Positions 5,480-64,000 of a DNA stretch of 64,000 nt are shown piece by piece. Position 1 is the stretch's first letter. Every line of letters begins with the position of its first letter. The stretch is from positions 248,001-312,000 of the IMG/VR virus record IMGVR_UViG_3300043399_000877, one strand, 5' to 3'. The notes beneath the pieces are model-generated. The model had not been told where the DNA came from. It worked only from the letters and a program-made list of their open reading frames with translations, and ran no database searches. The translations under genes and the position numbers were made by a program.

Positions 5480-5489
5480 TGGATACACA

Positions 5490-6500: not shown

Positions 6501-6508
6501 TTAAAAAT

Positions 6509-7528: not shown

Positions 7529-7530
7529 AA

Positions 7531-9604: not shown

Positions 9605-9638
9605 CAATATCTAAAAATAGCTAAACAATAAATATTGC

Positions 9639-16208: not shown

Positions 16209-16249
16209 TTTACTATTTTTAAAAATTAAATATAACAAAAAGGTGTATA

Positions 16250-18074: not shown

Positions 18075-18086
18075 ATAAATATTTAT
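18074..18086. promoter_or_regulatory. Back-to-back ATAAATA late-promoter-like motifs (palindrome ATAAATATTTAT)
   Basis: TATAAATA on + (18074-18081) and ATAAATA on - (18080-18086) lie between divergent genes. The T4 late consensus is TATAAATA. Confidence 0.55.
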
Positions 18087-18131
18087 GTGTACTTTATAAT
18101 GCAAATAATAATGTGATTTTCGGAGAAATTA

Positions 18132-19229: not shown

Positions 19230-19276
19230 CCGGATAGGCAAGATACTAGAATAAATATGTTAAATTGGGGATCAAC

Positions 19277-33679: not shown

Positions 33680-33970
33680 TTAGTATTTCAAATATGGACA
33701 AGCTAAAAGAAAATAACTCAAGTCTTTGCTATTTTCAAAAGCTATGTTTGTTGAATATTTAACTTTGCCGCCGCCAAATCCTTTGAAAGACGGATCGAGT
33801 TTTGATCCGATAAAATATCGGCCAGTTGTGTGTTCATCTATCCATGATTGTAACGCTCTGCTCATATTGTAAGTTAAGTCAACATTCACAGACTCAAAAT
33901 GAGGCGGGCAAAATTTTGCCCGCCTCATTCCAAAAACGTTAAGTGGATTTATTTTTATCTTTTTATCCAT
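33680..33970 (-). CDS. Hypothetical phage protein
   Basis: ATG overlaps the end of the VWA gene. Confidence 0.65.
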   Translation of the reverse strand: MDKKIKINPLNVFGMRRAKFCPPHFESVNVDLTYNMSRALQSWIDEHTTGRYFIGSKLDPSFKGFGGGKVKYSTNIAFENSKDLSYFLLACPYLKY

Positions 33971-35228
33971 GCTTTTCGTCATAATGTGCTGTAACACCAA
34001 ACGGTGCTTGAAGGTTCTTGTCGCGGTTACTGTGGATGATAAACACAGTGTCGCAGTAGTTTTCGTCACCCCAACTTCCAAAAGGATATCCGTCGGTAAA
34101 CATGATAAACTTCTTGGGCTGGATGTCGTGATTTTTCATGTATTCCCAGTTACAGTCAAAGTCAGTACCACCACCGCCGTGGATCTGATAATCCATCAAC
34201 TCGTTTCCGCCGTCAGCAGTAAAGTCCTGCTCATTATATACCCGAGTATCAAAACACCACAGCTTAATGCGATAATCTTTATACTCGTCCATAATGCCTT
34301 TGACTTCGCTCAAGAAGTCTTTTGCCTGATCGTTACCAATAGAACCGCTCATGTCAATGCTTACGGCAATATCGATAGTCTCATCAAACTGCATACCCGG
34401 CAGCACAGCGCCCATATGCCAACCTTTGCGGTTAGGACGAGCAAACGTATAGTCGCTCTTAATGGTGCTCTGGATTTGCTGACGCAGCAATTGACGCCAG
34501 TTCATCTTGGGCTCGGTCAGTTCCTTGATCAGTCGCTGCACACCTGCCGGAGTGTTGCCAGCACCAGCAGCTTGCGAAGCTTGAATCATGGCTTCCTTGA
34601 TCTCGTCACGGATCTTTTGCAGTTCTTCCTTGCTATAACGCGGACGCCCTTTACCCTTGCCATCCTTGTCACCATCACCGTCACCATCACCATCGTCACC
34701 CCAGTCGAGGTGCTCGTCAAGCAAATCACCGAGTTCGTCAATGTTGATCTTCTTAGCATTTTTAAACAGGTCGTCATAAACTGCTTCACTGCTCCAGCCT
34801 TCATACTTGAAGTCTTGGAAGCAATCAACCAGTGTGGGCTTCTGTCCGATGCGGTCACGAACCAGCATGTTGTTGACGATGTAGTCAGCTGCAATGTTAT
34901 ACAGCTTGGGGTCACGATCTTCACGACGAGTCAAGTGGTCAAAAACACAGTGCAGGATTTCGTGAGCAATAACAAACTCAATCTCTTTGTTGTTCATTGC
35001 GTTGAAAAACTGCGTGTTGTAGTACAAATGACGTCCGTCAGTCGCAGCAGTCGTGCACCAATCGTCGCATTCTTGAACACGAAGACGGGTTGCCATGTTA
35101 CCGAAGAACGGATGCTTTAGCAGAAGACCAATACGTGCAGTAACCACACGTTCGTGGACATCTGCTCGCATACGCTCGAGTTCTTCTTTGCTGAGTTGCT
35201 TGGGCTGATACTTGGGCTTCTTTGCCAT
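33963..35228 (-). CDS. Zincin metallopeptidase plus VWA domain protein (MoxR partner, DUF2201-like)
   Basis: TAATDG, HEILH zincin motif, IDMSGS MIDAS, GGGGTDF, FTDG. Confidence 0.9.
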   Translation of the reverse strand: MAKKPKYQPKQLSKEELERMRADVHERVVTARIGLLLKHPFFGNMATRLRVQECDDWCTTAATDGRHLYYNTQFFNAMNNKEIEFVIAHEILHCVFDHLTRREDRDPKLYNIAADYIVNNMLVRDRIGQKPTLVDCFQDFKYEGWSSEAVYDDLFKNAKKINIDELGDLLDEHLDWGDDGDGDGDGDKDGKGKGRPRYSKEELQKIRDEIKEAMIQASQAAGAGNTPAGVQRLIKELTEPKMNWRQLLRQQIQSTIKSDYTFARPNRKGWHMGAVLPGMQFDETIDIAVSIDMSGSIGNDQAKDFLSEVKGIMDEYKDYRIKLWCFDTRVYNEQDFTADGGNELMDYQIHGGGGTDFDCNWEYMKNHDIQPKKFIMFTDGYPFGSWGDENYCDTVFIIHSNRDKNLQAPFGVTAHYDEKHG

Positions 35229-35253
35229 GTGCTTAATCCTCTATTGCGCCTTA

Positions 35254-35282
35254 ACAATAGCAAATGTGCTAAGGCAAGTCAA
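35254..35282 (-). promoter_or_regulatory. Sigma70-type early promoter
   Basis: TTGACT-17 bp-TATTGT. Confidence 0.7.
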
Positions 35283-35283
35283 G

Positions 35284-35309
35284 AAAAAAAAGGGGGCGTT
35301 TCCGCCCCC
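35284..35309 (-). terminator. Rho-independent terminator
   Basis: GGGGGCG-GAAA-CGCCCCC followed by T8, just after the ATPase stop. Confidence 0.9.
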
Positions 35310-35316
35310 AGTAGTT

Positions 35317-36399
35317 TTACGAGTTACGGGCGTTCTTGATGTATTTACCGTAACGATTGTGGAACTCATCGAAGCACTCAACAGCGTCCGGGTCAATGTT
35401 CAATTGGTACTTGGTCAGTGCCAACACAATGCCCATGACAACCATCTCAGTGTCGAAGTTGTCCATTGCGAAGCGGAAGAAGTTGTTGACTTTTTCGTCA
35501 AACTGTTTGTCCTTGTGGTCTTCTGCTTCTTTGAGCTCGTAGCAAAGAGCAACAGTGAGCGAGTACATCGCGCTGATCTCCTTGGTCTTGAGCTCCTTAA
35601 CTTTGCCAGCAAGAATGTCGGTAGGATCCGGCATGCTGCTGGCAACCTTGCGGTGCGCCATAAACTTGACTGCTAACCCTTCGCCGATGGCGCCGGCCAC
35701 AAGATCAGTAATAGTCGACTCGTCCACATCGTCTTCCAACAGTTCGCTAACGAACGACCAGCTGCGCGGGGTAGCAAAGCTACGGGTTGCGCTCTTGGGG
35801 TCAAAGTCGTAAAGGTCTTTCTTGCTGAAAGTAAGGAAACCAACGACGTCTTTGTGGACGCGATTCTGCGTAGCCCAGTCGAACCAGTCGTCAAAGTCTA
35901 CACGCATTTCAAGGTGGATAAAGCGGTTTGCAAGCGGCGCCGGCATACGATACGTGACACCTTTGTCAGCTTCGCGGTTACCAGCGGCGATAATGAACAC
36001 GTTTTCCGGCAAGTGGTAAGTACCAACACGGCGGTTGAGAATCAGCTGATACGCAGCAGCCTGCACAGCCGGAGCAGCGGAGTTCATCTCGTCAAGGAAC
36101 AAGATAATCTTTTCATGCTTTGCAGCCATTTCAGCATCCGGCAGTTCGACCGGCGGCGCCCAAACCATCTTGCTGTCGTTGCTGTCAAAATACGGAATGC
36201 CTTTGATGTCAGTCGGCTCCCAAAGCGACAGACGCACGTCAATAACGTGGGCGTTGAGGTTTTCACCAATCTGGTGAACGATGTCGGATTTACCGATACC
36301 GGGCGGGCCCCAAAGGAAGATCGGGCGCTTCTTAAGCATTGCGTGACGAATGCTTTTCTTTGCAGTCTTGGCGGTAACAGTACGGTTAGCAGTATCCAT
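35317..36399 (-). CDS. MoxR-type AAA+ ATPase
   Basis: Walker A GPPGIGKS, Walker B LFLDE, AAGN, PLANRF, TPRSW. Confidence 0.92.
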   Translation of the reverse strand: MDTANRTVTAKTAKKSIRHAMLKKRPIFLWGPPGIGKSDIVHQIGENLNAHVIDVRLSLWEPTDIKGIPYFDSNDSKMVWAPPVELPDAEMAAKHEKIILFLDEMNSAAPAVQAAAYQLILNRRVGTYHLPENVFIIAAGNREADKGVTYRMPAPLANRFIHLEMRVDFDDWFDWATQNRVHKDVVGFLTFSKKDLYDFDPKSATRSFATPRSWSFVSELLEDDVDESTITDLVAGAIGEGLAVKFMAHRKVASSMPDPTDILAGKVKELKTKEISAMYSLTVALCYELKEAEDHKDKQFDEKVNNFFRFAMDNFDTEMVVMGIVLALTKYQLNIDPDAVECFDEFHNRYGKYIKNARNS

Positions 36400-43542: not shown

Positions 43543-43859
43543 TTCAGCCTCTCGAATGTACGATACTTTTCCATCTCTTGTTCATATTGATCTTTGAGTT
43601 CCTTTAGACGTGGATATTTCGATTCCATATCCACATCACGCTTTAACAACATCAAAGCATCGCGCATTTCGTCAATTTCTCTCATAACATCTCTACCATT
43701 TACTGTTAATGCAGCAGAAATGCTAACAGTGCGGTCTTTGCCACCACTTACGATTATGGAAGCATCTCCATATCCAGTGCTTGTATAAGACGTATCAATC
43801 TCGTAGACTGATACGCCCGGTGATGTAATGGAACTTTTAGGAATGTTTACGAAGGTCAT
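43539..43859 (-). CDS. Hypothetical protein
   Basis: Operon context. C-terminal KYPRLK motif. Confidence 0.65.
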   Translation of the reverse strand: MTFVNIPKSSITSPGVSVYEIDTSYTSTGYGDASIIVSGGKDRTVSISAALTVNGRDVMREIDEMRDALMLLKRDVDMESKYPRLKELKDQYEQEMEKYRTFERLK

Positions 43860-44853
43860 TTTCCATCATCTCGCTAACCAAGTCGTCAAACGAGTAATTT
43901 CTATGCCACTTTAAGACAGTTTCTGCCTTCTTGGGATCACCAATTAACAGGTCAACTTCTGCAGGACGATAAAAATTCGGATTAACCTTGACAACAACTT
44001 TGCCATCAATTCGACCAACTTCGTTAACATCGTTGCCTTCCCAGATAATGGTTTTGTTTACGTGACGAACAGCCGATTCCACAAACTCGCGGATTGTGCG
44101 GGTTTCACCAGTTGCAAGCACATAGTTATCAGGCTCTTTATGCTGCAACATCTGCCACATGCCATAAACATAGTCTTTCGCATGACCCCAGTCGCGACGT
44201 GCATTCAAGTTACCTAATTCAACATGCGAACGCTCTCCACGGAACACTTCTGACAATTGATATGTAATCTTTCTAGTCACAAACTCCAACCCACGACGCG
44301 GGCTTTCGTGATTGAAAAGGATACCGTTGCAACCAAACAGTCCATATGACTCTTTGTAGTTTTCAACCGACCAATATGCGAACAACTTGCCAACACCATA
44401 TGGCGATCTCGGATGGAACGGAGTCTTTTCCGATTGTGGAATTTCATGCACCTTGCCGTACAGTTCCGATGTTGAAGCTTGATAGAACTTGGTGTGTGGA
44501 ATCATGTCCAACTGACGTAAAATATCCAAAATTCTCAGTGTACCAAGTGCATTAATGTCGCATGTTTCAACTGGATTTTCAAAGGATACTTTAACGTGAC
44601 TCTGAGCAGCCAAGTTGTAAACTTCATCTGGCTGCGCAATTTTAATAATTTGATACAACGCAGCAGTATCAGTTAAACTTCCGTTATGCAAGTTTAATCT
44701 TGGATGATTAAGAATATTCTTAAGATGATGGCGCTTTTCAAGTGCTCCGCGACGTATAATGCCGTGGACACTGTAACCCTTATCTAGCAGAAGTTCTGCT
44801 AGATAAGAGCCATCTTGTCCGTTTATTCCTGTAATAAGTGCTGACTTCTTCAT
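43837..44853 (-). CDS. gmd: GDP-mannose 4,6-dehydratase
   Basis: ITGINGQDGSYLAE, NLAAQSHV, QASTSELYG, SPYGVGK, LFNHESPRRG, RDWGHAKDY. Confidence 0.96.
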   Translation of the reverse strand: MKKSALITGINGQDGSYLAELLLDKGYSVHGIIRRGALEKRHHLKNILNHPRLNLHNGSLTDTAALYQIIKIAQPDEVYNLAAQSHVKVSFENPVETCDINALGTLRILDILRQLDMIPHTKFYQASTSELYGKVHEIPQSEKTPFHPRSPYGVGKLFAYWSVENYKESYGLFGCNGILFNHESPRRGLEFVTRKITYQLSEVFRGERSHVELGNLNARRDWGHAKDYVYGMWQMLQHKEPDNYVLATGETRTIREFVESAVRHVNKTIIWEGNDVNEVGRIDGKVVVKVNPNFYRPAEVDLLIGDPKKAETVLKWHRNYSFDDLVSEMMENDLRKHS

Positions 44854-51760: not shown

Positions 51761-54427
51761 TTAGACGATCCTGAACAAACTGGTAAAGGTTTCATTTTGT
51801 TTTGTGCTTTCTAAGTCATATTCCAGAACGCCAATAAGGTTGTCTAGCTTATTGTCAATGATTGTTTCTTCCATTGCAGCATCATCAAAAGGCAATTCCT
51901 TAAACCAGTCAGGAAGTCTAAGTTCGTCAGTCGGATATGCAACACTTGTAAATCCCATCGGGTTATTTTTTAATTTACAAACAATAACCTTCATTCCATC
52001 AACGATTTCAATGCTGTATTTGTCGCCGTTCATTCGTTTTAATGTATTCCAGTTAATACTTGCCCGAACGTGTCCGGGTAAAACTGCTTTACTGCCTTTT
52101 TTCTTTTCTTCACGTTCGTAATGCTGAATGTTGTTTGCACGTTTTGGAGAACCTTTTTCGTAGCCAGGACGGCTCTTAAATTCATTCCTGAATTCTTTAA
52201 CTGATGCAAGTATTTCAGCTTCGGGGCGGCCTTTTAGAACCATAAGTAACACTTCCATTAAGTATTCTTGCATGAATACCGGAGTATCCGAACGCTTTAG
52301 GTCCAATCCCATTGCCTTTACTTTTCCAGGTTTGCCGTCCACGTCTTTTCTCTTACCCTCTTCGTCATATACTAACACAGCATAACGCTTCTTGGTAATA
52401 AAAAGTCCACTTTCACCGACTATTTCTCGACCAGCAGCAATAACTTCTGCTCTGCTCTTTGGACAATGGAAAGCCTGGCCCATGAAATCGGAGAAACTGC
52501 GGTTTACTTCATCAGCTATTTGGTCGTATAGTTCAACAACTGTTTCCTTGGTCCACGGAACCAAGTTCTTTTCAATGTCATCTTTCAATACCGGGTACAT
52601 GCTAAAATACACAGAGTCTGTATCACCGTATATGATAGTTTTTCCAATATGATTGTATTCTCCAGTTGCAATTTCATTAACTTTTGCAGCCATGTGCTTG
52701 GCAATTCCACGACCAGTAAGGGTTGTACTTTGTCCGATGCGCTTATCAAAAAATCTACAACCTGGGTTAAGAATAGCACCATAAAGACTGTTAAGGTTGA
52801 TCTTTTTAACCAGCTGTCGTTTATCCCAAAACTCTATTTCAGATTGTACTCCAGCTTCAACAGCTTTTTTCTTCATAGCTTGAAGCTCTTTACGCTCTTT
52901 GTACCATCTTGCAAGCAATCCGGGTATAACAGCCTCAAACTCAGTCGTAAAAATAGTGCCGTTTGCACTGATCATCCAAGGCTTGTTACTGTCAAATATA
53001 AGTTTAAATGCCTGTGCTGCGCTCATTACTTCGCTATTACCGTTAACCCAGTCAACAGTTACGTCGAAATCGACTCGCTCATCCATAATTGCAGCATATT
53101 CTAGGGTACCAAACAATCCTTCCCATGCAGCACTGAAACTCTTTTTCTTTAGAGTCATCTGATCTTCAATATATTTGTCAGTGGCTGTTGGCCTAACTTG
53201 ACCGATTATACTTTCTGGTGCCATGTTTAATGCACGAATAACCGATGGATACAGGCTGTTCAAGTCCATTGAGCCAATCCAACGATGGAAGCCTTTTTTT
53301 GGATTCGCAACATATGCGCCGGCTGCTTGAGTGTCTTCCTCAAAGTTTCCACGATTCTGGACTTGCATTCCACGTCGATGTGCTTCGTTAATGATTGCCT
53401 GTTCAGTAACAGCCACAGCGCCCATGGTTGTCTGTATTAACACAGTGTTATCATGAGCGATCTCGTTAGCCAGATCAATAAACCGCAGTTTTTTATCTAG
53501 TTTGTCAAGTAGTGCAACGTCCTGTCGGTTATACTCAATGAATGTTCTAAAATCATTGTTGTAGAGTTGATCCAGTGTGCCTTCATATTGCGTTTTACGT
53601 TCGTTTAGTTCATATTCACCGATTGCGTCCAGTCGATAACTGTGTCGTTCTTCGTAAGTATACTTTCTGTAAAGTTCAAGACTGTCTAAATGTATGCGGC
53701 CTACTAAATCGTAAGTTTCGGCAGTCTTACCAAATTTTTCATACTCACGTTTCTTTGGAAACTGATTCCATAAACAAAATCTGCGAGTATCGCTTTTGCT
53801 CATAACTCTTGCTACACGGTTTACCATGTAGGGAATATCGTAGCCTTCGCTGTTCCAACCACTGAGAATGTCTGCATCCTCAATTAAGTTGAAAAACTCT
53901 TCAAGCATTTCAATTTCAGACTCGAATATAAAAGTATTGCTGAAATCTTTAACTAATTCACGAGCATCGGCAACGGATAGCGATTTGGGTGGGATCGCCA
54001 AAGTTACCAAACTGTCCATCCATTGTAAATGCACAGTGATAGCAGTGATTGGCATAAATGGATCGTTTGTTGGAGCAAATCCCCGGTTTGGGTCAAAGTC
54101 AGTTTCAATGTCAAAGAACGCAATATGCAACTTTGGTGCATCTTGGTTGATGTAGTTTTCACTTAAACATTGAAATATAGGATTTATATCACTTTCGAAC
54201 AACCGCTTGTTCTTGTTTATGGCAAGTTCTTTACGATACTCTTTGGTATTTTTACAAACGATCCTGGAAAGCGGATCTCCATAGACGCTGCGAAACTTTC
54301 CACGCTGGTCTTCATAATAAAAAGTATATTTTGTGGGATATTGTTGATACATGCGCTTTCCGTCTTTGCGCTCTACAACATTTATAACGTCAGCATCCCT
54401 ATCAAAAAATGCATCAATGTACGGCAT
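51761..54427 (-). CDS. Family B DNA polymerase (gp43-like)
   Basis: Exo motifs DIET, GWN...YD and YN.QD. Pol motifs DLNSLYPS, K...NSLYG, YGDTDS and KKRY. Confidence 0.96.
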   Translation of the reverse strand: MPYIDAFFDRDADVINVVERKDGKRMYQQYPTKYTFYYEDQRGKFRSVYGDPLSRIVCKNTKEYRKELAINKNKRLFESDINPIFQCLSENYINQDAPKLHIAFFDIETDFDPNRGFAPTNDPFMPITAITVHLQWMDSLVTLAIPPKSLSVADARELVKDFSNTFIFESEIEMLEEFFNLIEDADILSGWNSEGYDIPYMVNRVARVMSKSDTRRFCLWNQFPKKREYEKFGKTAETYDLVGRIHLDSLELYRKYTYEERHSYRLDAIGEYELNERKTQYEGTLDQLYNNDFRTFIEYNRQDVALLDKLDKKLRFIDLANEIAHDNTVLIQTTMGAVAVTEQAIINEAHRRGMQVQNRGNFEEDTQAAGAYVANPKKGFHRWIGSMDLNSLYPSVIRALNMAPESIIGQVRPTATDKYIEDQMTLKKKSFSAAWEGLFGTLEYAAIMDERVDFDVTVDWVNGNSEVMSAAQAFKLIFDSNKPWMISANGTIFTTEFEAVIPGLLARWYKERKELQAMKKKAVEAGVQSEIEFWDKRQLVKKINLNSLYGAILNPGCRFFDKRIGQSTTLTGRGIAKHMAAKVNEIATGEYNHIGKTIIYGDTDSVYFSMYPVLKDDIEKNLVPWTKETVVELYDQIADEVNRSFSDFMGQAFHCPKSRAEVIAAGREIVGESGLFITKKRYAVLVYDEEGKRKDVDGKPGKVKAMGLDLKRSDTPVFMQEYLMEVLLMVLKGRPEAEILASVKEFRNEFKSRPGYEKGSPKRANNIQHYEREEKKKGSKAVLPGHVRASINWNTLKRMNGDKYSIEIVDGMKVIVCKLKNNPMGFTSVAYPTDELRLPDWFKELPFDDAAMEETIIDNKLDNLIGVLEYDLESTKQNETFTSLFRIV

Positions 54428-55394: not shown

Positions 55395-55994
55395 TTACTT
55401 GACGTACGCACCAATTCTACCATGAACGTCCGGGTATTCACGGTAGCTGTATCCCGGTGGTGGGTTGACGATTTCGCCCTCCCACACTGGAATAAACTCA
55501 CTGATGCCACCGTCAAAGTCTTCATTTTTTCTAAAATGAACTTCTATGAGGCGGCCACCAATGAACTCGCAATTTATATATTCGTATTTTTCTTTGAATG
55601 ATTTTAAGATATCAGGAAATGCGACAACATCATCCGTTTTTTTCCATGATTTCCATCGCGTAAAAGTGTTGTCTGGTTTAAATCCTTCAACACACAATAT
55701 TTGTTCCCCGTTTCTGTAATCCACACTTAGGTGTCTTCCGTCAAACCATTCACACCAAAAAAATCCCAACGGTAAATGATCAGTGTTATCGTCTAACCAA
55801 AGTTTTTGTGCCCCCAATCCAAGCCCCATTAGGTTCACACACGGGCGCACAATATAAAAATCAGGTTTAGGAACATCTAGCCCAGTTGGACCGCAAATGT
55901 ATCCGGATTTTCTTGATAGTATCAGTTTGTCTAAGACCCAGATATGATCTGGGTCTATGTTTTTCCAAGCAATCTCCTCGGCGCTAAGGCTCAT
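55395..55994 (-). CDS. Minimal ATP-grasp-like protein
   Basis: YIVRP..N..G.G.GA, FWCEWF.G.H.SVD, IN.EFI...LIEVHFR. Confidence 0.5.
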   Translation of the reverse strand: MSLSAEEIAWKNIDPDHIWVLDKLILSRKSGYICGPTGLDVPKPDFYIVRPCVNLMGLGLGAQKLWLDDNTDHLPLGFFWCEWFDGRHLSVDYRNGEQILCVEGFKPDNTFTRWKSWKKTDDVVAFPDILKSFKEKYEYINCEFIGGRLIEVHFRKNEDFDGGISEFIPVWEGEIVNPPPGYSYREYPDVHGRIGAYVK

Positions 55995-56917
55995 TGGAAA
56001 TAAAATATCATCCCGGGTTCGTTATTGCCTGCTTTGTTTTTTATATTGTCTTTACGAATCATTCCAAGTTCTCGTAGTGGTTCATAAAACTCTCGCTCTT
56101 TGACTGATGAGCTCATAGCCATTTGTTTAGGCCATGATGGATATGTCACTTTTATAGCTGTAACTGGTTGTTTTGTTACCTGATCTCTGACACGGTGGTT
56201 GATGTAAACAGCTTTTCCACCCAACGTTTTATCAATAAAAGCGGCAGCTTTTTTGACTCTTCTAAGATGATCTGCATTAAAAAACTCTGGCATACGTTCA
56301 ATAGCTTGTGCATTTTTATCAGCAGCATCGTCTGACCACGCTTTAGCTTGTAGTGGGCTCACGGCGCGTCGCCCGCCGGTCATTCTCTCATCGTCGTCTT
56401 TTCCAAACCCCGGAGCCTCTTTTACGTGTTCTGGTTTGCCCTTGTGTTTGGTTGCAGCATAATCATGCGCTGCTTTCTTGCTCATGCCTTTGGCTACTTT
56501 AGCAACTTCTGGACTTGCCGGCTCTTCGCCTTTTTTGGCAGCATAAACCATACCCATGAACTTTTGTTGTGCTTTTGACTTTGCTTTTTCAAGAAGTGCC
56601 TTGTATTCAAGTTCTTCTGACTCACTCATTGCAGCCTTTGGTTTGCGGTTTTCCGGCATAACAGTGGCAGTGGTCATTTGATCATAACTTAAACTTTTGT
56701 AAACACTGTCAATGTATTCAGCAGCTTTGGTTATTTTTGCCTGTTGCCACCCTTCAAGACCCTTTTCTTCGCTTATGCCTTTTAGCAGTGCATGAAGTTT
56801 TATGGCGTTGTCTGCAAGATGATACAAGTCGGCACGTGCCATCTGCACTTCGTGATCCCAGTCGGCACTTCCAGCAAGCTCTGATAGTCCTTCGGATAAT
56901 TTGTTTTTCTTAGTCAT
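55991..56917 (-). CDS. Multi-module putative internal head protein containing a DUF3008-like module
   Basis: KAKSKAQQKFMG.V.A.KKGE...ATKHKGKPEH. Also a LEGWQQAKITKA module. Confidence 0.6.
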   Translation of the reverse strand: MTKKNKLSEGLSELAGSADWDHEVQMARADLYHLADNAIKLHALLKGISEEKGLEGWQQAKITKAAEYIDSVYKSLSYDQMTTATVMPENRKPKAAMSESEELEYKALLEKAKSKAQQKFMGMVYAAKKGEEPASPEVAKVAKGMSKKAAHDYAATKHKGKPEHVKEAPGFGKDDDERMTGGRRAVSPLQAKAWSDDAADKNAQAIERMPEFFNADHLRRVKKAAAFIDKTLGGKAVYINHRVRDQVTKQPVTAIKVTYPSWPKQMAMSSSVKEREFYEPLRELGMIRKDNIKNKAGNNEPGMIFYFQ

Positions 56918-56944
56918 AGGTATCTCCAAAAGTATTTTAAATAT

Positions 56945-57154
56945 TTATCGTTTTATGGGTCCACCGAATATATTTGTTGTCATATCAAGTGCGTTTTTAA
57001 CGGTTCCGTCTGGATTCGTTGCTTGTTGAGCCCGCGGCAATCCGTTCTTACTTTTACCTATTTTGCGCTTAACTGCCGGCATCGGTGCTGATGCTATTGA
57101 CCCGGCTCCGGTTCCGCCTGCTGTTGCAGATTCTAAAATTTCACGTATTTTCAT
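56945..57154 (-). CDS. Small putative internal head protein
   Basis: MKIREILE N-terminus. Confidence 0.6.
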   Translation of the reverse strand: MKIREILESATAGGTGAGSIASAPMPAVKRKIGKSKNGLPRAQQATNPDGTVKNALDMTTNIFGGPIKR

Positions 57155-57174
57155 TTTTAATACTGTTTGTCCCT

Positions 57175-58335
57175 TTAAAAAAAATCTACACTAAAAGCAT
57201 CATCATAAAAAGCATCCACTGCTCGGTCGTATTCATCTTTGCTAAGGTATTGGTTATGTGTCAAATCAGTTAGACCTGGTTCAGTAACTACGGCATATGC
57301 AAACTTTCTCCGCAAATCCTTATATTCGGGGAGTAGGTTTGTTATTTTCAATGTCCATTTTGGATTTCTTTTTATTAATTTATGCTGAAGATCATAAGGA
57401 ACCGGGTGTCTAGTGGGATCCTTGAGGTCGAGCTTGGGCATAAAACTGGGTTTTTTTGCTATAAGATCCGATACCGCTTCATCACTTAAATCTAACAAAT
57501 CAAAGTTTTTATGTGCCTCATATCCACCACCTTTTATTCCCGTTATGAAATCTTGCAGTAATAAGTCTACTATATACGGATGATATTTAGCAGCAGGCTT
57601 TTCATTAGCACGACCTTTCATCTCTCCTAGCTTCCCATTTTTATCTAAAATGAAAGTTAGGTGAGGTTTTTGTTTTTCACCTTCAATAGTTCTAAAACTA
57701 AGTATTCGATCACCGGCTTTTTCACTAGGGACGTTGCCGCAGTGCCCCATGGCATCTGCTTCGTCACTGCATGCTCCGCGGGCAAGCATGACCCATGCAT
57801 ATTTCCCATATTTTAGTATGATTTTATCATTTTCTTTTGGATTAACCCATTGTTTTTGTTTAGCATTGTGCTCTGCCTCTAAACTTTTTAGTTTGTCCGT
57901 CATCTGACGCGGCAGCATGTTAGCGTCCCAAGTCAGTTGATCCAATAAAGGTATGCTCAACGAATATGTTAGATGCTCTAGTGCATCGGGATTTTGCCAG
58001 CGCAAACTAAAATAGCTGACATCAGCTGTGCGAGTTTCGTCGTAGTCTACTTTGGTAATACGCCGGAAAAGCTGTTTAAGTTCTGCTGTTCTAGATTCAA
58101 ACTTTGGATCGGCCAGTATAGCTGATACTTTTTTATGTGTTTCACTAATTCTGAACCAACGCAGATACCAAACAATTCTGTCTTGACGTTTTAGCGTATT
58201 GCGCAGTTTTCGAACTACACTGTCAGCGCGCCCAGCATCTATGATGTCATTGTTAACCATGGGTTCAAGCATTTGCTTATATTGCGCTTGGTTCTCATCA
58301 AGTCTCAATATTGTTCTAAATTCCAAAAATTTCAT
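57175..58335 (-). CDS. Putative internal head protein with PcfJ-like domain
   Basis: MKFLEF N-terminus. EADAMGHCG...ILSFR...PHLT.....E.KG..N. Confidence 0.6.
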   Translation of the reverse strand: MKFLEFRTILRLDENQAQYKQMLEPMVNNDIIDAGRADSVVRKLRNTLKRQDRIVWYLRWFRISETHKKVSAILADPKFESRTAELKQLFRRITKVDYDETRTADVSYFSLRWQNPDALEHLTYSLSIPLLDQLTWDANMLPRQMTDKLKSLEAEHNAKQKQWVNPKENDKIILKYGKYAWVMLARGACSDEADAMGHCGNVPSEKAGDRILSFRTIEGEKQKPHLTFILDKNGKLGEMKGRANEKPAAKYHPYIVDLLLQDFITGIKGGGYEAHKNFDLLDLSDEAVSDLIAKKPSFMPKLDLKDPTRHPVPYDLQHKLIKRNPKWTLKITNLLPEYKDLRRKFAYAVVTEPGLTDLTHNQYLSKDEYDRAVDAFYDDAFSVDFF

Positions 58336-59066
58336 TATGTCCCCCCAACCAGTTTGCCATGCAAAGGATGCCGAGTTCGACCGGGCTTTGCTTTTGGCAT
58401 AGGCCCGCCGCCCCGTGCCTGGCCTTTGACGCCAGTTGCGTATTCTTCATTTGATTTTTTATTGCGACCGCTTTTCATGTTTGCAAGCCAGTGTGCCATA
58501 CGTTGTTTTTCGCCTGAGCTATTTTTAGCAGTTTTTCGTAAACTACTCACGCTGGCCTTGGTGTTTACTCCCATCCGTTTGGATAATCCTCGTCTTCCCG
58601 GGTTCCGCCCGTCTTTGAAGTTTTCATTTTTTTGATTTATTAATTCTGAATTTATAAATCTGTCAGCAGACACAGGGTTTGCTATAAGCAAATGCCCATT
58701 TTCACTGTATGCCCTGTAAATCTTGTCTTGTGGTAATATTTTAAAAGAAATTTCGTCTCCAAACCAATTTCCAGACGATGTGCTTACAAAAATTCCTTTT
58801 GGAGTACGCCAGTCTTTTCCAGCTCTTAAATCGTATAAGGCAAATTCTCGTTCTCCCGAAACGTCGGCCCTAGGGCGTAATCCACCTGATTTTAAAATTT
58901 CAGCCATTTTTTTGGTTTGGTGATAGACTGTTGTTCCGTTTAGCTTTTCTCGCTCTTCTGGAGAAAGTTCAAAAACATTAAGTCCAACAGTATTTCCAGG
59001 AGGACTTATGATTTTTCCGGATTGATTGTTGTTTTCGTTTATGTTTGAAAATTCACTAAATCGCAT
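58335..59066 (-). CDS. Putative internal head protein with ADP-ribosyltransferase-like domain
   Basis: MRFSEF N-terminus. VYHQT...IL..GGL.P...GIFVSTS. Confidence 0.55.
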   Translation of the reverse strand: MRFSEFSNINENNNQSGKIISPPGNTVGLNVFELSPEEREKLNGTTVYHQTKKMAEILKSGGLRPRADVSGEREFALYDLRAGKDWRTPKGIFVSTSSGNWFGDEISFKILPQDKIYRAYSENGHLLIANPVSADRFINSELINQKNENFKDGRNPGRRGLSKRMGVNTKASVSSLRKTAKNSSGEKQRMAHWLANMKSGRNKKSNEEYATGVKGQARGGGPMPKAKPGRTRHPLHGKLVGGT

Positions 59067-59085
59067 ACCTGACCCAATCTTTATA

Positions 59086-60540
59086 TTATTTATTCAACCA
59101 GTCAAATAACCTTTTTGGTGGGTCAGAGTCAAGTGTATGCCCGCCTTGAATAGCAGCCCATTCAAGTGCAGTATATTTTTCCGGCAACCCTTTTGTAAAC
59201 TTATCCAAATCAAGAACATCTGCTTCTATTGTAGTTTCGCCTCGCAATTTGGCGGCAAATACCGCATGATGCCCGTCACGAACAAACAGTCGATTTTTAT
59301 ATTTTACTATGGGAATACGTTTGTTAGTTTTTACTTTGTCGCGCAACGTGTCTTCGTCTTCTATTCGCACAAACGGTTGTGTTGGCGTAAGTTTTTGGAT
59401 ATCGACTGTTTGGGGGACCGAATTGCTCAATAATTTTTTAGTTGCTGCTGAACGATAACGGTCTGTTGGGTCTGTGTGTAGATGTTTTACTACGTCGTAA
59501 AATGCCGATTCCATCTCGTCAACTAGGTCATCGCTAAATCCCTTTAGTGGAACATACTGACCGGGAACGGTTCCACTACGATCGTACCCGTAGTTTTTTT
59601 CTTTACCGTAAATTTTGGCGGTACGTTTTGCAAGATCAACTGGATCTGCCCTGCGTTCTTCTATGGTCTGCCGCTTGCCGTCACTTCTTAATGCTGGCGG
59701 AAATCCGTCACGAGTTACACGGTTTCCAAATTTTGCCGCTTCGATTCGTGTTTGGTCTACCCCAACATCAACGGTCGTGTTTACGCCCCGAACAATTCTA
59801 CCATCTTCGTTCATATTGGTTTTCATACGAGTTGCAGTGGCAGCTATGCGTATTTCTTCGTCATCGCCCAAATATGCTTCGTGGAAGTTTTCGGCAGTTG
59901 CCGGTCGAACGGTCTCTTCGTATTCGTCTATGATATAGGTGTATATATTTGGATGTTTTGTTACTAACTCGTACCATAGTTTTTTGGAACCGGGGGTTTG
60001 TTGATTATCACTTATGACCTTAATTTTGTATTTGAGTATGGCTATTGAATACAACTGTGATGCAAGGCCGCGTCCACGTAGTTCTTTACTAAAACGAACT
60101 GTACTTTCGTAAAATCCGTTTTCGTATGGAGACATGGTCAAATCTCCGAGTATTCTTATTGGCTTGCTTTTATCATCAATTATGTTAAAAGTGTGTTCTT
60201 GATTTAAGAATCTGTGATAAACAGCGAATCCACCCACAGTGTAGGGAGTTTTTTCTAGAGATTTTAAGTACTGTTGGTTTTGGCTGTCCTGGGTAAAATC
60301 AATGTCGTCCGGGACCCCGGCAATCATTCTTATTTCTTTTATTCGTCCGTGCTTTCCACGAGCGCCGCCCTGCCACCACTTGCACCATCCTTCAGGACTT
60401 ATTTTACCAGCAACTGCGGTACACCGATCAGGATCTCGCCACATAGTGCAATAAATGCACTTTTGCCCAGCATGCGGTTTAGCCTGATAGCCGGCCTCAC
60501 TTTTGCTACTTTTAGATTCCGAAAGGTCGTCCAGCCTCAT
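59086..60540 (-). CDS. Multidomain protein: HiPIP + GNAT + ParB/Srx-like
   Basis: YQ..P..GQKC..C..W....C..V.G.I.P.GWC..W, then LRGRGLASQLY...SD..QT.G...LW, then L.PTQ...DGHH. Confidence 0.7.
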   Translation of the reverse strand: MRLDDLSESKSSKSEAGYQAKPHAGQKCIYCTMWRDPDRCTAVAGKISPEGWCKWWQGGARGKHGRIKEIRMIAGVPDDIDFTQDSQNQQYLKSLEKTPYTVGGFAVYHRFLNQEHTFNIIDDKSKPIRILGDLTMSPYENGFYESTVRFSKELRGRGLASQLYSIAILKYKIKVISDNQQTPGSKKLWYELVTKHPNIYTYIIDEYEETVRPATAENFHEAYLGDDEEIRIAATATRMKTNMNEDGRIVRGVNTTVDVGVDQTRIEAAKFGNRVTRDGFPPALRSDGKRQTIEERRADPVDLAKRTAKIYGKEKNYGYDRSGTVPGQYVPLKGFSDDLVDEMESAFYDVVKHLHTDPTDRYRSAATKKLLSNSVPQTVDIQKLTPTQPFVRIEDEDTLRDKVKTNKRIPIVKYKNRLFVRDGHHAVFAAKLRGETTIEADVLDLDKFTKGLPEKYTALEWAAIQGGHTLDSDPPKRLFDWLNK

Positions 60541-60917
60541 TAGACACCATACCGATTTCTTTTTGGTTTTGCAACCGGGCTAGTTTTGTTTATAGTATCA
60601 AGTTCTTTGCTTTTCATATCGCCTTTGTTTAAGTCAGTATGGCTTGCCCCGGCTGCCTTGTAAGCATGTTTTAGCATTTCTGCTTCTAACTCTGAATATG
60701 GATGCGCCGATTTTCTCTTACCGATCCAACTTTTGCGATCAATATCAATAGGATTAGTACCATCAGCACACGCTAATGCCATCATAAGACGGTATTGTAC
60801 GTAGTCGCTGTTCATATGTTCAGCATCGCTGTATGTGTGTACACCACGAGTAGGCATTTGTTGACGTTTAGTTAGCTTGCCTTCAGTTCGTTCTGTTATT
60901 AATTCTCTTAATCTCAT
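60540..60917 (-). CDS. Putative internal head protein
   Basis: MRLRELITE N-terminus. Confidence 0.65.
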   Translation of the reverse strand: MRLRELITERTEGKLTKRQQMPTRGVHTYSDAEHMNSDYVQYRLMMALACADGTNPIDIDRKSWIGKRKSAHPYSELEAEMLKHAYKAAGASHTDLNKGDMKSKELDTINKTSPVAKPKRNRYGV

Positions 60918-61129
60918 TTTGTTCGACCTCTAAATTGCACTGGTCCGTTGAGGTAAGGCAAGCTAAACCACAACTTAAACCATTCAGGATCACCGGGTTT
61001 TAGACCCATTTCTTTTTCTAAACGTTTCTTTTCCATACCAGTAACTGATATGTTTGAACCGTCGTATAGACTATATCCTTTAAATTCGTTAATGCCAGCT
61101 AGTTTTTTAATGTAATCAAGTTCGTCCAT
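60914..61129 (-). CDS. Small phage protein (IKKLAGI motif)
   Basis: ATGA coupling. Confidence 0.65.
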   Translation of the reverse strand: MDELDYIKKLAGINEFKGYSLYDGSNISVTGMEKKRLEKEMGLKPGDPEWFKLWFSLPYLNGPVQFRGRTK

Positions 61130-61668
61130 TATCGTATAAACTCACTTAATTTATTAAAAAGCCTGTCCGTATACTTATCGTCTGGTACTCCGCGAGCAAA
61201 ACCCGCACGATCGCCGATGCGAACAAGATGTCGTTGTGTGCTTGCACTCATGCCAGAAACATCAGCGGCATCCGGATCACGATCTCCAGCACTGATTACT
61301 GATATAGTGTCGAAGCTATATTCATGGTTATTATATTTTTTTAAAAGTATATCAAAAGATTCTACACGATCCGATCCCACAACCATCACAATGTCAGTAT
61401 AACCTTTTGATTCCAAAAGTTTTAACACGTCAATAATGTTTGATGCGTGGTCGTCACCCACAACTACACCCTTAAAAAACTCAGCAGCAAATTCTTTTTT
61501 TATGTTATACGGTAACGGGTCAGTTCTTGGATGTGTTTTGTGACTTAAAAAAACATAGTGGTCGCCGGGCTGCTTGCATAGAAATTCTACAAGTCGCAAA
61601 TGCCCGGTAGTGGGAGGGTTCATTCTCCCGAACGTAAATACTGCTGTTTTTTTAAGTCTTACGGTCAT
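61129..61668 (-). CDS. HxGH nucleotidyltransferase (cytidyltransferase-like)
   Basis: FGRMNPPTTGH, VVGSDR, GMSAS. Confidence 0.85.
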   Translation of the reverse strand: MTVRLKKTAVFTFGRMNPPTTGHLRLVEFLCKQPGDHYVFLSHKTHPRTDPLPYNIKKEFAAEFFKGVVVGDDHASNIIDVLKLLESKGYTDIVMVVGSDRVESFDILLKKYNNHEYSFDTISVISAGDRDPDAADVSGMSASTQRHLVRIGDRAGFARGVPDDKYTDRLFNKLSEFIR

Positions 61669-62006
61669 GGGTTCTCCAGTGGTGGCATACTTGACTCAGG
61701 GTTGAGTAGTGCATTAATTACTTGCATCTTAGTATGTTTGTCAAATATTTTTTCAGGATCATGTGGAATATTAAATTTTTTGCAATATACTTTTATTCCA
61801 TGATCCACGATTGGAAGTAGTGACTGGGTGTTTATTTCTCTGTTTGTCTTCTTCATATTTTGAAGAGACAACAATGCTGGATACAAGTGCTTGCGATAAA
61901 ACATACGGTCGTTTTGCATGAATATAACTAAATCTTGGCCAGGGTCGTAATTCAACACCGGTTCGTCTTCGCGAGTATTACCGAAAAACTCGTTTATTTT
62001 TACCAT
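61665..62006 (-). CDS. Hypothetical phage protein
   Basis: MVKINEF N-terminus, operon context. Confidence 0.65.
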   Translation of the reverse strand: MVKINEFFGNTREDEPVLNYDPGQDLVIFMQNDRMFYRKHLYPALLSLQNMKKTNREINTQSLLPIVDHGIKVYCKKFNIPHDPEKIFDKHTKMQVINALLNPESSMPPLENP

Positions 62007-62566
62007 TTCTTACAACTCCAAAATCTGGCTTTATGGCGTGGTCCCGGATTATCGCAATTGTGTCTTGCTCTAAAACTCCGGCGTCTCGCCGGGTTGGACT
62101 TTTTAATTCTCATGTTTGGATCACCAAAGTTAACCTTTACAACATTGCCACCGGGTTTCCGCACATACACTTTGAATTTTTTTACGTCGCCACGCATGGG
62201 TTTACCTAACGGGACTGAGCGACCTTGGTATTCTGCCTCGTCGAGAGTTTCATCTTCATTAAACCACATTACACCGTATTCGGCAAAAAAGTCGTCACCC
62301 TCGTATGTTTCTTCTTCGATATCTTCATCCATGTCTGTACTAAATTCAATATCAAAGTCATTAAATCCGCTATCAAAAAGGTAAGTGCTTAGTTTGTTTG
62401 CATACTCGTCGCTTTCGGTTTCGCTTAATGCTCTTGGTAACGGAATATAAAAACACTGGGCTCCTTGATCAGTTTCAAATAGTTGACTTTCCGGAAATAT
62501 AGAACTGTCTATATTCTCAGTCAGTGTATCTTTTTTCTCAAATATAACTCTTACAAAATGTTCCAT
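62000..62566 (-). CDS. Two-module phage protein (acidic N-terminal module, basic C-terminal FRARHNC module)
   Basis: C-terminal AEYQGR.V.L.KP...V.FGD...RRSFRARHNC...FWSC..W. Confidence 0.65.
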   Translation of the reverse strand: MEHFVRVIFEKKDTLTENIDSSIFPESQLFETDQGAQCFYIPLPRALSETESDEYANKLSTYLFDSGFNDFDIEFSTDMDEDIEEETYEGDDFFAEYGVMWFNEDETLDEAEYQGRSVPLGKPMRGDVKKFKVYVRKPGGNVVKVNFGDPNMRIKKSNPARRRSFRARHNCDNPGPRHKARFWSCKKW

Positions 62567-62584: not shown

Positions 62585-63250
62585 TTACCAGGTGTCGCCA
62601 GACCAAGCAACTCTTTTCCATATGTCAGCCACACCGTCAACATAATCCGCAGTGCAATAATAAAAATATGACGAGTCAAATGCTATTGTTCCAACCTTAT
62701 CGTTAACACTACCCTTACTCGTAACCGGAGCAGGCGAGATACGAACCGATCCTCCGTTTGGAAACAACATGGACCCGTCTGCAGAAAACTGCCAGGTATT
62801 CCCATTCGCTGCAATATTCACCGGGGGGTTTGAACCGCTTAAAACCCTAAAATGACTTGTTTCTCCACCTAGGAAGAGATCGGCTATGCTGTTATCTTGA
62901 GAACCGCCTGCGCGAATATGTATGTGGTTCGGGAAAGTAGGTTCTATTATTATGTATTGATCTGTATTATTATTGTTGTATAGTTCGGAGTCTGGAACTA
63001 GTCGTATGGTATCTAGACCAGATTGATCAGCACTGTTAGCATTGCTTCCGTATAAAATCCCCGGACCTAACACTTTGCTTTTAACATGAGTCCTCAGTCC
63101 ATCAAACATAAGCATAACCAGCTTATTTGGATTAGCATTAGTGTCTATAAAAAACCCAACTTCTCCAAACGGTCTTACTTCGTCTGTAGCGTTTGCATTA
63201 GCGTCATTTCCGTCTATTTGGCTTACGTTAATTCTTCTTATGGTGGTCAT
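62585..63250 (-). CDS. Probable virion structural protein
   Basis: Gly/Asn/Ser-rich. C-terminal P.TS.G..G...A.D..Y.Y.C...WKR motif typical of fibre/collar proteins. Confidence 0.6.
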   Translation of the reverse strand: MTTIRRINVSQIDGNDANANATDEVRPFGEVGFFIDTNANPNKLVMLMFDGLRTHVKSKVLGPGILYGSNANSADQSGLDTIRLVPDSELYNNNNTDQYIIIEPTFPNHIHIRAGGSQDNSIADLFLGGETSHFRVLSGSNPPVNIAANGNTWQFSADGSMLFPNGGSVRISPAPVTSKGSVNDKVGTIAFDSSYFYYCTADYVDGVADIWKRVAWSGDTW

Positions 63251-63262
63251 ATTTAACTCCTA

Positions 63263-64000
63263 TTAATCCCAGAACTCTGAACCGTAGAAAACTTTAGCAG
63301 TCCAGTGAACTTTGAGAGTTTTTGCTTCCCCGTCAATCCTACGATAACTGATAGTGCCTTCGTTTTGAACTAACCACAAATCGTCATTTTCTGCGTCAGT
63401 GCTACCACTGCTTACTTCGGTGTGACTTATATGTTCTTCACCACTGTCGTCTACAATGTGTATGGTTCCAATCCATGTTGCCTCTCCAGAATACGCATGG
63501 TAGTCTATGACTGCTCCTCTAAAATCAGCAGCCCCACCCGGTAGGTCAGCTTTATTCCACCATACTACCGGTTCTGCTCCGGTGCTTACTCTATAATAAA
63601 TAGGATCGTTTGTATTAATCGTAACCGAACGATCTCCCACGAGATATATTTGTAACCAGTTATTGGTGCTGGACCCTACCACTCTGGCTGGGTACCAGGT
63701 GATGTCATCCAAACTTATTTCAAGTTCAAAATTTGTTGGACCATCATACAAGTTATATAAATCTTGATCCCATATCAAATAGATGTAATAATCAAATCTG
63801 CTATCAAAACTAGCGCCTTGTACAACCGGTTGCGTTATTCTTTCTGTTACTGAAATAGTTTTATTACCAGATACCTCTTCAATTCTTCGGTTACCACTGG
63901 CTGTAGATTTTACTCTTCCGATTCCGGTAGCTGTTTTGAGTACTGTACCATCCGAAAATTTAACTCCCTCGTTGACTTTTGTAATGTCAATTTCTCTGCG
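63263..64000 (-). CDS. Probable virion structural protein, 3' part (5' end beyond the window)
   Basis: Frame stays open to position 64000 and includes VKFSDGT..KTA. Confidence 0.6.
   Translation of the reverse strand, partial: RREIDITKVNEGVKFSDGTVLKTATGIGRVKSTASGNRRIEEVSGNKTISVTERITQPVVQGASFDSRFDYYIYLIWDQDLYNLYDGPTNFELEISLDDITWYPARVVGSSTNNWLQIYLVGDRSVTINTNDPIYYRVSTGAEPVVWWNKADLPGGAADFRGAVIDYHAYSGEATWIGTIHIVDDSGEEHISHTEVSSGSTDAENDDLWLVQNEGTISYRRIDGEAKTLKVHWTAKVFYGSEFWD

Follow-up and report, generated by a model that had tools for sequence, protein, structure and literature searches.

The stretch of DNA analysed here (the window, 64,000 nucleotides) covers positions 248,001 to 312,000 of the viral contig IMGVR_UViG_3300043399_000877 (381,886 bp) and holds a cluster of ten tightly packed genes, all on the minus strand, at 55991-62566. 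The genes are named by the length of their products (p188, p113, p179, p71, p125, p484, p243, p386, p69, and p312; Table 1). Many of the products begin with the same kind of short leader, and several consist of unrelated modules joined at h-x-E, where h is a hydrophobic residue and x is any residue. An original prediction for this locus had read these features as capsid targeting and as polyproteins cut by a prohead protease. The cluster is flanked by a tail-fibre-like gene on one side and a DNA polymerase block on the other. The family-B DNA polymerase (PolB) of this block shares 45-50% identity with its counterparts in Sinorhizobium phage Phosso, in Agrobacterium phage Atu_ph07, and in T4-related jumbo phages of the Rak2/121Q group, and Atu_ph07 is among the nearest cultured phages by this comparison. 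IMG/VR was searched with p386, p243, and p69, which gave about 130 related loci for comparison.

Table 1. Genes, modules and neighbouring features in window coordinates. Arrows mark the end of a leader or a module boundary; aa, amino acids.
Feature	Position	Strand	Description
p188	62000-62566	-	acidic N-terminal part (net about -25), TLDE↓A (TLDE, aa 107-110), basic C-terminal module (net about +16)
FRARHNC module	62003-62236	-	p188 aa 111-188; phrog_7595
p113	61665-62006	-	leader MVKINEF; orthologues MKINEF, MRIDEF, MKIQDLFE, MKIIELLE
p179	61129-61668	-	cytidylyltransferase-like enzyme, 179 aa, no leader
p71	60914-61129	-	71-aa protein MDELDYIKKLAGINEF; family kept in the syntenic cluster
p125	60540-60917	-	basic; leader MRLRELITE; orthologues MKVFEIISE, MRAYEFIIE, MKILDIITE
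p484, whole gene	59086-60540	-	leader MRLDDLSE
p484 module 1	60334-60540	-	aa 1-69; leader and Cys-rich module (HiPIP-like, sub-threshold) ending ..RIKE
p484 module 2	59806-60333	-	aa 70-245; GNAT-like (weak, RGRGLAS motif), ends in fossil leader MKTNMNE
p484 module 3a	59656-59805	-	aa 246-295; GRIVRGVNTT half-module, then fossil leader ..KRQTIEE
p484 module 4	59179-59655	-	aa 296-454; ParB-like insert (Pfam ParBc_2 sub-threshold, DGHH motif)
p484 module 3b	59089-59178	-	aa 455-484; KYTALEWAAIQGGHTL tail
p243	58335-59066	-	leader MRFSEFSNINE, candidate ADP-ribosyltransferase-fold domain (about aa 28-145), QKNE↓, module B, basic tail
Module B	58452-58622	-	p243 aa 149-205; 57-aa basic module
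p386	57175-58335	-	putatively PcfJ-like; leader MKFLEFRTILRLDE
p69	56945-57154	-	basic; leader MKIREILE, then SATAGGTGAGSIA
p312	55991-56917	-	312-aa ORF, probably 308 aa; MTKKNKLSE↓GLSE, DHEVQMARA module, ALLE↓, DUF3008, HVKE↓, C-terminal part
DUF3008	56417-56587	-	p312 aa 115-171
PolB	51761-54427	-	family-B DNA polymerase
199-aa protein	55395-55994	-	phrog_3577 (function unknown)
221-aa gene	62585-63250
740-aa ORF	63263-64000		runs past the window end (continued in L001, 1-5073); ORF 63263-63778 is its C-terminal part
Radical SAM block	4403-21228	+	at least 8 radical SAM genes
DUF2201 metallopeptidase	33963-36399	-	with VWA-like domain; pair with MoxR-type AAA ATPase
GDP-mannose 4,6-dehydratase	43837-44853

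The six N-termini listed in the original prediction (MKIREILE, MKFLEF..RLDE, MRFSEFSNINE, MRLDDLSE, MRLRELITE, and MVKINEF) are present as claimed. The leaders read M[KR]hx[ED]h, followed by h-x-E (ILE, LDE, INE, LSE, or ITE). Scored as ^M.?[KR]hx[ED]h over 79 greedily called genes of the window, this motif heads six of the ten cluster genes and none of the 69 others (Fisher p=7.6e-7), and the count expected from position-specific composition is 0.003 per gene. An h-x-E within the first 14 residues is found in 8 of 10 cluster genes versus 11 of 69 elsewhere in the window. Two further cluster genes, p312 and p188, carry degenerate versions of the leader. The start of p312 is most likely the ATG at 56917, which has a GGAG upstream and would give MTKKNKLSE↓GLSE; its homologues begin MREKEFKE↓GLGD. 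The N-terminus of p188, MEHFVRVIFE, has hydrophobic residues at positions 4 and 7 and I-x-E at positions 8-10.

The claimed likeness to the capsid-targeting sequence (CTS) of T4 is borne out at the functional positions, which are two hydrophobic residues three apart followed by [ILV]-x-E. The T4 internal proteins IPI, IPII, and IPIII likewise carry a short M-K-..-h-x-E-F-[I]-x-E tag on unrelated proteins with basic mature parts, and diverse proteins with only the tag in common are already recorded in the T4 literature. The T4 record gives MKTYQEFIAE↓A for IPIII, MKTFKEF...ITE↓A for IPI, and MAKINELLRE↓S for gp24. No more than the first 10 residues of IPIII are needed for packaging, with residues 4 and 7 responsible for targeting and residues 8 and 10 directing processing by the protease gp21, which cuts after L-x-E or I-x-E. 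Compared with the T4 CTS, the leader described here has one residue fewer between M-K and its first hydrophobic position, but p188 fits the T4 spacing exactly (F4, V7, I8, and E10), and MVKINEF of p113 is close to the start of gp24. The two systems also differ in scale (at least 1400 protein clusters for one module here) and in cargo, since the proteins here are multi-module polyproteins with internal junction sites and include metabolic enzymes. In addition, the genes here form a syntenic block beside the DNA polymerase of an uncultivated jumbo-phage lineage known from sequence alone.

Across the related loci, the strict leader motif heads 160 of 1847 unique proteins, with the consensus M-[KR]-[IAL]-x-[ED]-[FLI]-[ILVF]-x-E. 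Orthologues of p113, p125, p386, p312, and the cytidylyltransferase keep the pattern of the leader and not its letters, and the leader codons vary synonymously (AAA/AAG/AGA/CGT, GAA/GAG/GAT/GAC, and TTT/TTC/TTA/ATA). Judging from these coding sequences, we take the leader to be selected at the protein level. The orthologues of p179 in related contigs begin MLLRELFE or MRLRELFE, and the cytidylyltransferase of the window has apparently lost this leader. Beyond the leader, the cluster proteins have no Pfam or PHROG family in common, and the cargos found under the leader in related loci and metagenomes include NUDIX, GNAT, ParB, GH19, and cytidylyltransferase proteins as well as many unknown ones. 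The gene order is the same in many contigs, namely p188 (62-78% identity to its syntenic homologues), p113, cytidylyltransferase, p71, GRIVKG protein, module-B proteins, p69, p312, and then DNA polymerase. Because this synteny extends across many contigs, the cluster is a feature of the lineage and not a private cassette. The term "cassette" in the original prediction therefore fits only in part, as the genes form a conserved block beside the DNA polymerase and are neither private nor freely mobile. A tblastn search of 50,697 cultured phage records gave no match to p243 or p69, and the sole cultured homologue of p386 is gp31 of Salicola phage SCTP-2, which starts MRLNNLFE. The region around the cytidylyltransferase of cyanophage S-PM2 was considered as a further leader locus and rejected, as it contains DUF3008 and no leaders.

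Judged by PolB and the PcfJ-like protein, the closest relatives in culture are Atu_ph07 and SCTP-2 (Rak2-like sister clade). The virion proteome of Atu_ph07 has been published (Attai et al. 2018) and comprises 131 of 714 gene products identified by electrospray ionization tandem mass spectrometry. We read the whole Atu_ph07 genome and flagged annotated starts that match ^M[KR]hx[ED]h or ^M[KR]hxx[LIVMF]xE, which gave 25 genes (gp43, 46, 47, 53-63, 196, 199, 381, 408, 451, 482, 487, 548, 561, 597, and 672). The products of 23 of these (92%) are in the virion, compared with 108 of the 689 others (Fisher p=4.6e-16). By body sequence, the 25 genes fall into 13 families, 11 of which are represented in the virion. 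One is a paralogous family with 13 members (gp53-63, gp408, and gp482), all virion proteins that begin with M[KR]WxQLxE or a close variant, and the other twelve genes belong to twelve other families. Examples of these starts are MKWNDLNE (gp53), MRLFQLLE (gp63), and MRWNDLLE (gp482), and another type reads MRLIDLLE. In the published gels, gp53 (87 kDa) is most abundant in a band with proteins of ~20-29 kDa, gp482 (32 kDa) bands with proteins of 13-14 kDa, and gp63 (41 kDa) with proteins of 25-30 kDa. These undersized bands suggest processing; the Atu_ph07 paper mentions neither leaders nor cleavage.

SCTP-2 also has clustered leader-like starts (L137, MF360958 18364-36813) at gp31, gp33 (MKIRHLYE), gp34, gp36 (KITELFE), and gp40 (MKVKHILFE), and this cultured jumbo phage would be an experimental model for the tag. 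Two unannotated Atu_ph07 ORFs have leader starts as well (NC_042013 22449-22868 (+), MRIIDLEY; 315248-315526 (-), MRLFDLFE). In gp278 and gp407 of Atu_ph07 (NC_042013 214920 (+) and 303788 (+)), a leader lies 10-11 codons inside the annotated start, which suggests that these starts were mis-called. The N-terminus of p71, MDELDYIKKLAGINEF, is of a different type and resembles those of the Atu_ph07 virion proteins gp111 (MDIERLKILAGLE; ..KILAGLE..) and gp257, a NUDIX protein (MNIDKLKKLAGIKKDE; ..KKLAGIKKDE). From this resemblance, the p71-type N-terminus may be a second kind of N-terminal tag.

The internal junctions listed in the original prediction are likewise all present, including RIKE (aa 66-69), (MKT)NMNE (aa 239-245), TIEE (aa 292-295), and GLPE (aa 451-454) in p484, ALLE (aa 111-114) and HVKE (aa 168-171) in the 312-aa ORF, and TLDE in p188. 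A further junction that it had missed is QKNE↓NFKDG of p243 (aa 145-149). By itself, h-x-E is no rarity: [LIVMF]-x-E occurs at a background of 0.020 per residue. The junctions exceed chance because homologues retain h-x-E at the same module boundaries, which is the comparison on which the original prediction had staked itself. Five module types (module B, GRIVKGVNTT, DUF3008, FRARHNC, and p69) start after h-x-E with varying sequences upstream. Module B is 80-90% identical across contigs, and the residue preceding it is Glu in 49 of 49 unique proteins from the related loci, whose upstream sequences are unrelated; in one protein it directly follows the leader (MRAKEFITE↓NFADGK). A search of 5.8 billion proteins gave at least 1401 clusters (90% identity) containing module B. 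In the best 120 of these proteins, the residue before the boundary (P1) is Glu in all 120, P3 is V, L, I, M, or F in 98, and 67 begin with a leader; the module-B cargos include NUDIX, GNAT, ParB, GH19, and dCMP deaminase. In metagenomic proteins, module B (NFADGKNPGRKGLAK...RMAHW.ANMK; loci L020-L098) is fused to the C-terminus of many enzyme types, and it is absent from the 50,697 cultured phage genomes. By eye only, its C-terminal half resembles the DUF3008 core (SKAQQKFMGM).

The other modules follow the same rule. The GRIVKGVNTT module is preceded by h-x-E in 14 of 14 proteins, ten of which have it directly after the N-terminal leader. DUF3008 is preceded by L-x-E in all six proteins that contain it, and is followed by V-x-E where the protein continues but not where the protein ends. 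The FRARHNC module follows h-x-E↓A in 19 of 19 homologues of the lineage, and Pelagibacter phage Kolga encodes it as a gene of its own that starts M↓AKYQGR, exactly at the module boundary. Internal copies of the p69 module come after VKE, IYE, LGE, MQE, and MNE. With a pI of 10-12, the mature modules are strongly basic, and the 20 residues that precede module B average a net charge of -2. With its acidic N-terminal part and basic C-terminal module, p188 has the layout of a masked pro-protein. Literature searches on the module strings and DUF3008 returned nothing relevant.

In p484, the junctions can be traced to separate genes. The Cys-rich module that ends ..RIKE in p484 ends VDE in a related locus (L069), where ↓DGRIV follows. 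The junction MKTNMNE↓DGRIV aligns with gene starts such as MKLREIFEN↓GGRIV, and KRQTIEE↓RRADP aligns with MKIRDILDE↓RKINP, the start of a separate ParB-like gene in L021. The ParB-like unit splits the GRIVKG...EKYTAxEW module, which is contiguous elsewhere, and the tail that forms module 3b of p484 directly follows the GRIVKG module in L027 and L071. Given this alignment with separate gene starts, we identify these junctions as fossil leaders of fused genes. No ribosome-binding site (Shine-Dalgarno-like) is visible before the internal ATG of p484.

A link to the capsid comes from p69. In the Atu_ph07-like clade, the 12-mer [SNT]A[TSG]AG[AS]T[SA]AGN[VI] is preceded by L-x-E in 73 of 73 unique contexts from major capsid proteins. 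The resulting sequence, L-x-E↓SATAGATSAGN, lies in a region homologous to the mature N-terminal region of the T4 capsid protein gp23, and the cleavage of gp23 at LTE↓A is a few residues upstream of that homologous region. Proteins of the p69 family (p69 and loci L148-L227) have identical 12-mers directly after the leader, and ILE↓SATAGGTGAGSIA of p69 aligns with ..APLME↓NATAGATSSGNV.. of the Atu_ph07 capsid protein (gp215). By this match, the p69 family copies the capsid-protein junction. We know of no T4 counterpart of such a 60-90-aa non-capsid family with the capsid-junction 12-mer after a leader. A homologue of T4 gp21 (~33% identity) is encoded 1-2 kb upstream of the capsid gene in 80 clade loci, and in Atu_ph07 it is gp204 (33% identity to T4 gp21). 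One of these loci (L210) is on the same contig as another related locus (L002), so that a gp21 homologue beside the capsid gene and a PcfJ-like protein starting MKLIEVVELFE are found together. Between the portal and protease genes lies a gene for a ~80-aa protein with a leader-like start, MILRELFY.. (gp199 in Atu_ph07, MKLTELFNPLTE). A published review assigns the S77 protease to jumbo-phage groups 1 and 2.

The original prediction regarded the cargos as small effectors. The majority of the small modules are strongly basic and resemble internal peptides associated with DNA, which does not fit this description, but some cargos are enzyme-like, with parts that resemble the ADP-ribosyltransferase (ART) fold, PcfJ, ParB, and GNAT. 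The AF2 model of the p243 N-terminal domain has a pLDDT of 64 and Foldseek E-values of 0.05 or worse. In VIA-align, every match with Z>=3 has the ART fold, including Tpt1/KptA (Z 5.9-6.7) and Arr, both of the H-Y-E-like clade, as well as CC0527, Tne2, and TreTu. The domain has no match in Pfam, in PDB sequences, or in Pfam searched with its relatives, and its family is small (27 representatives) and outside Pfam. H49, S95, and E105 are invariant or nearly so in the family alignment. The model suggests an ART fold, with p243 as a candidate, and this parallels T4 Alt, a packaged ADP-ribosyltransferase that is trimmed by gp21. Atu_ph07 gp381 (MKWQDLSE..VYHGS) was considered as an ART-like relative of p243 and rejected (hhalign probability 0.3%). 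For p386, no Pfam match was found at E<=0.1; PcfJ (PF14284) occurs in 17-26% of the members of its nearest ESM Atlas clusters (score 0.94), and a structural neighbour has a TM score of 0.76 (by the hit). We call p386 putatively PcfJ-like by these Atlas features and the structure only. The GNAT-like and ParB-like parts of p484 had nothing significant in PDB sequences and are weak leads. The DUF3008-like module named in the original prediction scores above the Pfam gathering cutoff (PF11450, 32.1 bits versus 24, aa 116-169 of the 312-aa ORF), and five PHROGs cover the same stretch. No peptidase family was detected in the cluster proteins, at Pfam E<=0.1 or in PHROGs.

With moderate confidence, we believe that the leaders are T4-CTS-like head-targeting propeptides, and that the cluster encodes protease-cut polyproteins packaged as head-internal proteins of a T4-related jumbo phage. 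By analogy with T4, a leader of 8-14 residues, M-[KR]-h-x-[ED]-h-[ILV]-x-E, would act like the CTS, and its two hydrophobic residues would dock the protein on the scaffolding core of the prohead. A T4 gp21-type (S77) prohead protease would then cut the leader after the Glu of [ILV]-x-E. The inter-module h-x-E sites would be cut too, which would split the fused precursors (484, 312, 243, and 188 aa) while they are inside the prohead. Acidic pro-parts would be lost, and small peptides of strongly basic composition would be among the products and remain with the DNA. The enzyme-like cargos would probably leave with the DNA at infection.

The main rival accepts a true virion or prohead tag and regards the internal h-x-E motifs as relics of in-frame fusions, so that the proteins would be packaged whole or lose the leader only. 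MKTNMNE and KRQTIEE of p484, which align with the leaders of separate genes, are what such fusions would leave behind, and gp54-62 of Atu_ph07 run at about their intact size. However, the junction is kept in hundreds of proteins whose upstream sequences are unrelated and not leader-like (GESIEHE↓NFADGK and FNEDETLDE↓AEYQGR), and V-x-E follows DUF3008 only where the protein continues, albeit in few proteins. T4-type proteases cut any accessible L-x-E or I-x-E inside the prohead, and the 87-kDa gp53 occurs mainly in the ~20-29 kDa band. We consider this account unlikely. A smaller chance is given to the view that the leader and the C-terminal basic modules direct proteins to another protease or to a destination other than the capsid, such as a replication or nucleotide-metabolism complex or the intracellular DNA, with h-x-E serving a non-capsid glutamyl endopeptidase or none. 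The cluster adjoins the DNA polymerase in every syntenic contig, the cargos include cytidylyltransferase, NUDIX, dCMP deaminase, and 5'-nucleotidase, and the late-promoter motif was not found in the cluster. The Atu_ph07 proteome and the capsid-junction copy in p69 make this destination less likely, since 92% of the leader-bearing Atu_ph07 proteins are virion proteins; moreover, a head-module protein encoded between portal and protease has a similar N-terminus, and even NUDIX proteins (gp257 and gp303) are in the Atu_ph07 virion. It is very improbable that the shared N-terminus has no function and reflects chance, composition, a translation-initiation preference, or paralogy. Phage genes often have Lys or Arg at position 2 and AT-rich codons near the start, and the 13 Atu_ph07 genes gp53-63, gp408, and gp482 are indeed paralogues, but the motif is missing from all 69 other window genes, its codons vary synonymously, orthologues retain the pattern and not the letters, and it is kept on unrelated cargos and in 13 separate Atu_ph07 families.

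Several observations weigh against head targeting and polyprotein cleavage as proposed here. We infer packaging and cleavage of the window's own proteins only indirectly, and likewise infer from T4 that the capsid protein of the clade is cut at L-x-E↓S. In the stretches of this contig that were analysed, its protease, scaffold, and capsid genes did not turn up. With the Atu_ph07 capsid protein as query, 169 loci matched, the best 80 of which do not include this contig; it was not among the matches listed for a degenerate DNA pattern of the capsid motif; and T4 head proteins searched against all related loci matched in three unrelated T4-like contigs only. Within the window, the cytidylyltransferase has no leader, the cluster adjoins replication genes, and the T4-type late promoter TATAAATA occurs four times, which is below chance expectation, with none in the cluster. 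Many leader cargos elsewhere are metabolic enzymes (NUDIX, GNAT, cytidylyltransferase, and dCMP deaminase), which would be unusual capsid contents. The invariant P1 Glu could be a structural part of each module, and at least two internal junctions of p484 are explained by gene fusion alone, without cleavage. As for Atu_ph07, its leaders differ in detail (M[KR]WxQLxE), gp451 and gp597 are leader-like yet absent from the virion proteome, and whole-virion proteomics cannot separate head from tail. Among Atu_ph07 proteins, the window cargos have only a weak cytidylyltransferase match and are not homologous; the parallel therefore concerns the tag and not the proteins.

The proposed packaging and cleavage can be compared with two other known systems. 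Polyvalent proteins likewise combine several unrelated conflict-type domains (ART, GNAT, and ParB-like) in one polypeptide, and the fate proposed for them is packaging, processing, and delivery together with the DNA (Iyer et al. 2017, PMC5512222). In the cluster, at least two unrelated effector-type domains are found in p484 (Cys module, GNAT-like, GRIVKG, and ParB-like) and in p243 (candidate ART fold and module B). Unlike polyvalent proteins, for which self-processing by an embedded zincin-like peptidase was proposed, the cluster proteins have no such domain detected, are much smaller, and would be cut at a short linear motif by the prohead protease. In the absence of an embedded peptidase, we do not file the cluster under polyvalent proteins, though it may work similarly. 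Ejection and inner-body proteins of the giant phages phiKZ, 201phi2-1, and SPN3US offer the other comparison; there, a gp21-related protease cleaves many head proteins after Glu, propeptides are lost, and cargo is ejected into the host. These phages belong to a different lineage, their cleavage motif is S-x-E, A-x-E, or G-x-E and not [LIV]-x-E, and the literature searched on them describes no comparable common N-terminal address tag.

A CTS with a gp21-type protease is a kind of system already known, whereas the searchable literature describes neither such a scale nor the polyprotein grammar, the capsid-junction mimic, or the use in an uncultivated jumbo-phage clade. Tentatively, and with less than an even chance in our estimate, an address-and-cut grammar (the leader M[KR]hxEh[ILV]xE plus inter-module h-x-E) may define the packaged proteome of a very large uncultivated aquatic clade of T4-related, often jumbo, phages. 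Their heads would be pre-loaded with dozens of shuffled modules, among them NUDIX, GNAT, ART-fold, and ParB-like proteins, nucleotidyltransferases, and basic peptides that are 88% identical across contigs, and small proteins with a junction copy, such as p69, could compete as substrates of the prohead protease or regulate it. Should the leader be a capsid address, sequence alone could serve to predict which proteins uncultivable phages package and probably inject; in Atu_ph07, the motif picks out virion proteins with 92% precision, most of them without annotation. The CTS principle, known for a few internal proteins of T4, would then extend to a modular polyprotein system with thousands of members, orphan modules such as DUF3008, FRARHNC, and the 57-aa basic module (at least 1400 protein clusters) would gain a function, and new tags would become available to load foreign proteins into non-T4 phage heads. 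This reading yields exact predictions that are open to mass spectrometry.

Other features of the window lie outside the cluster. In the radical SAM block, two genes have SPASM-like N-termini and one has a B12-binding domain, and the GC content (0.31-0.36) is lower than that of the remaining window (~0.41); Atu_ph07 has three radical SAM genes (gp165, gp168, and gp171). The DUF2201 metallopeptidase gene adjoins a gene for a MoxR-type AAA ATPase, and a GDP-mannose 4,6-dehydratase gene is also present. Next to the cluster, the 740-aa ORF has an N-terminus (..GSGDQSGDGESIRSAFVKINENFDEVY) that we take to resemble phage tail fibres, and this ORF and the 221-aa gene are both absent from syntenic contigs. 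On the other side, the gene for the 199-aa protein lies downstream of the cluster and keeps this place in related contigs.

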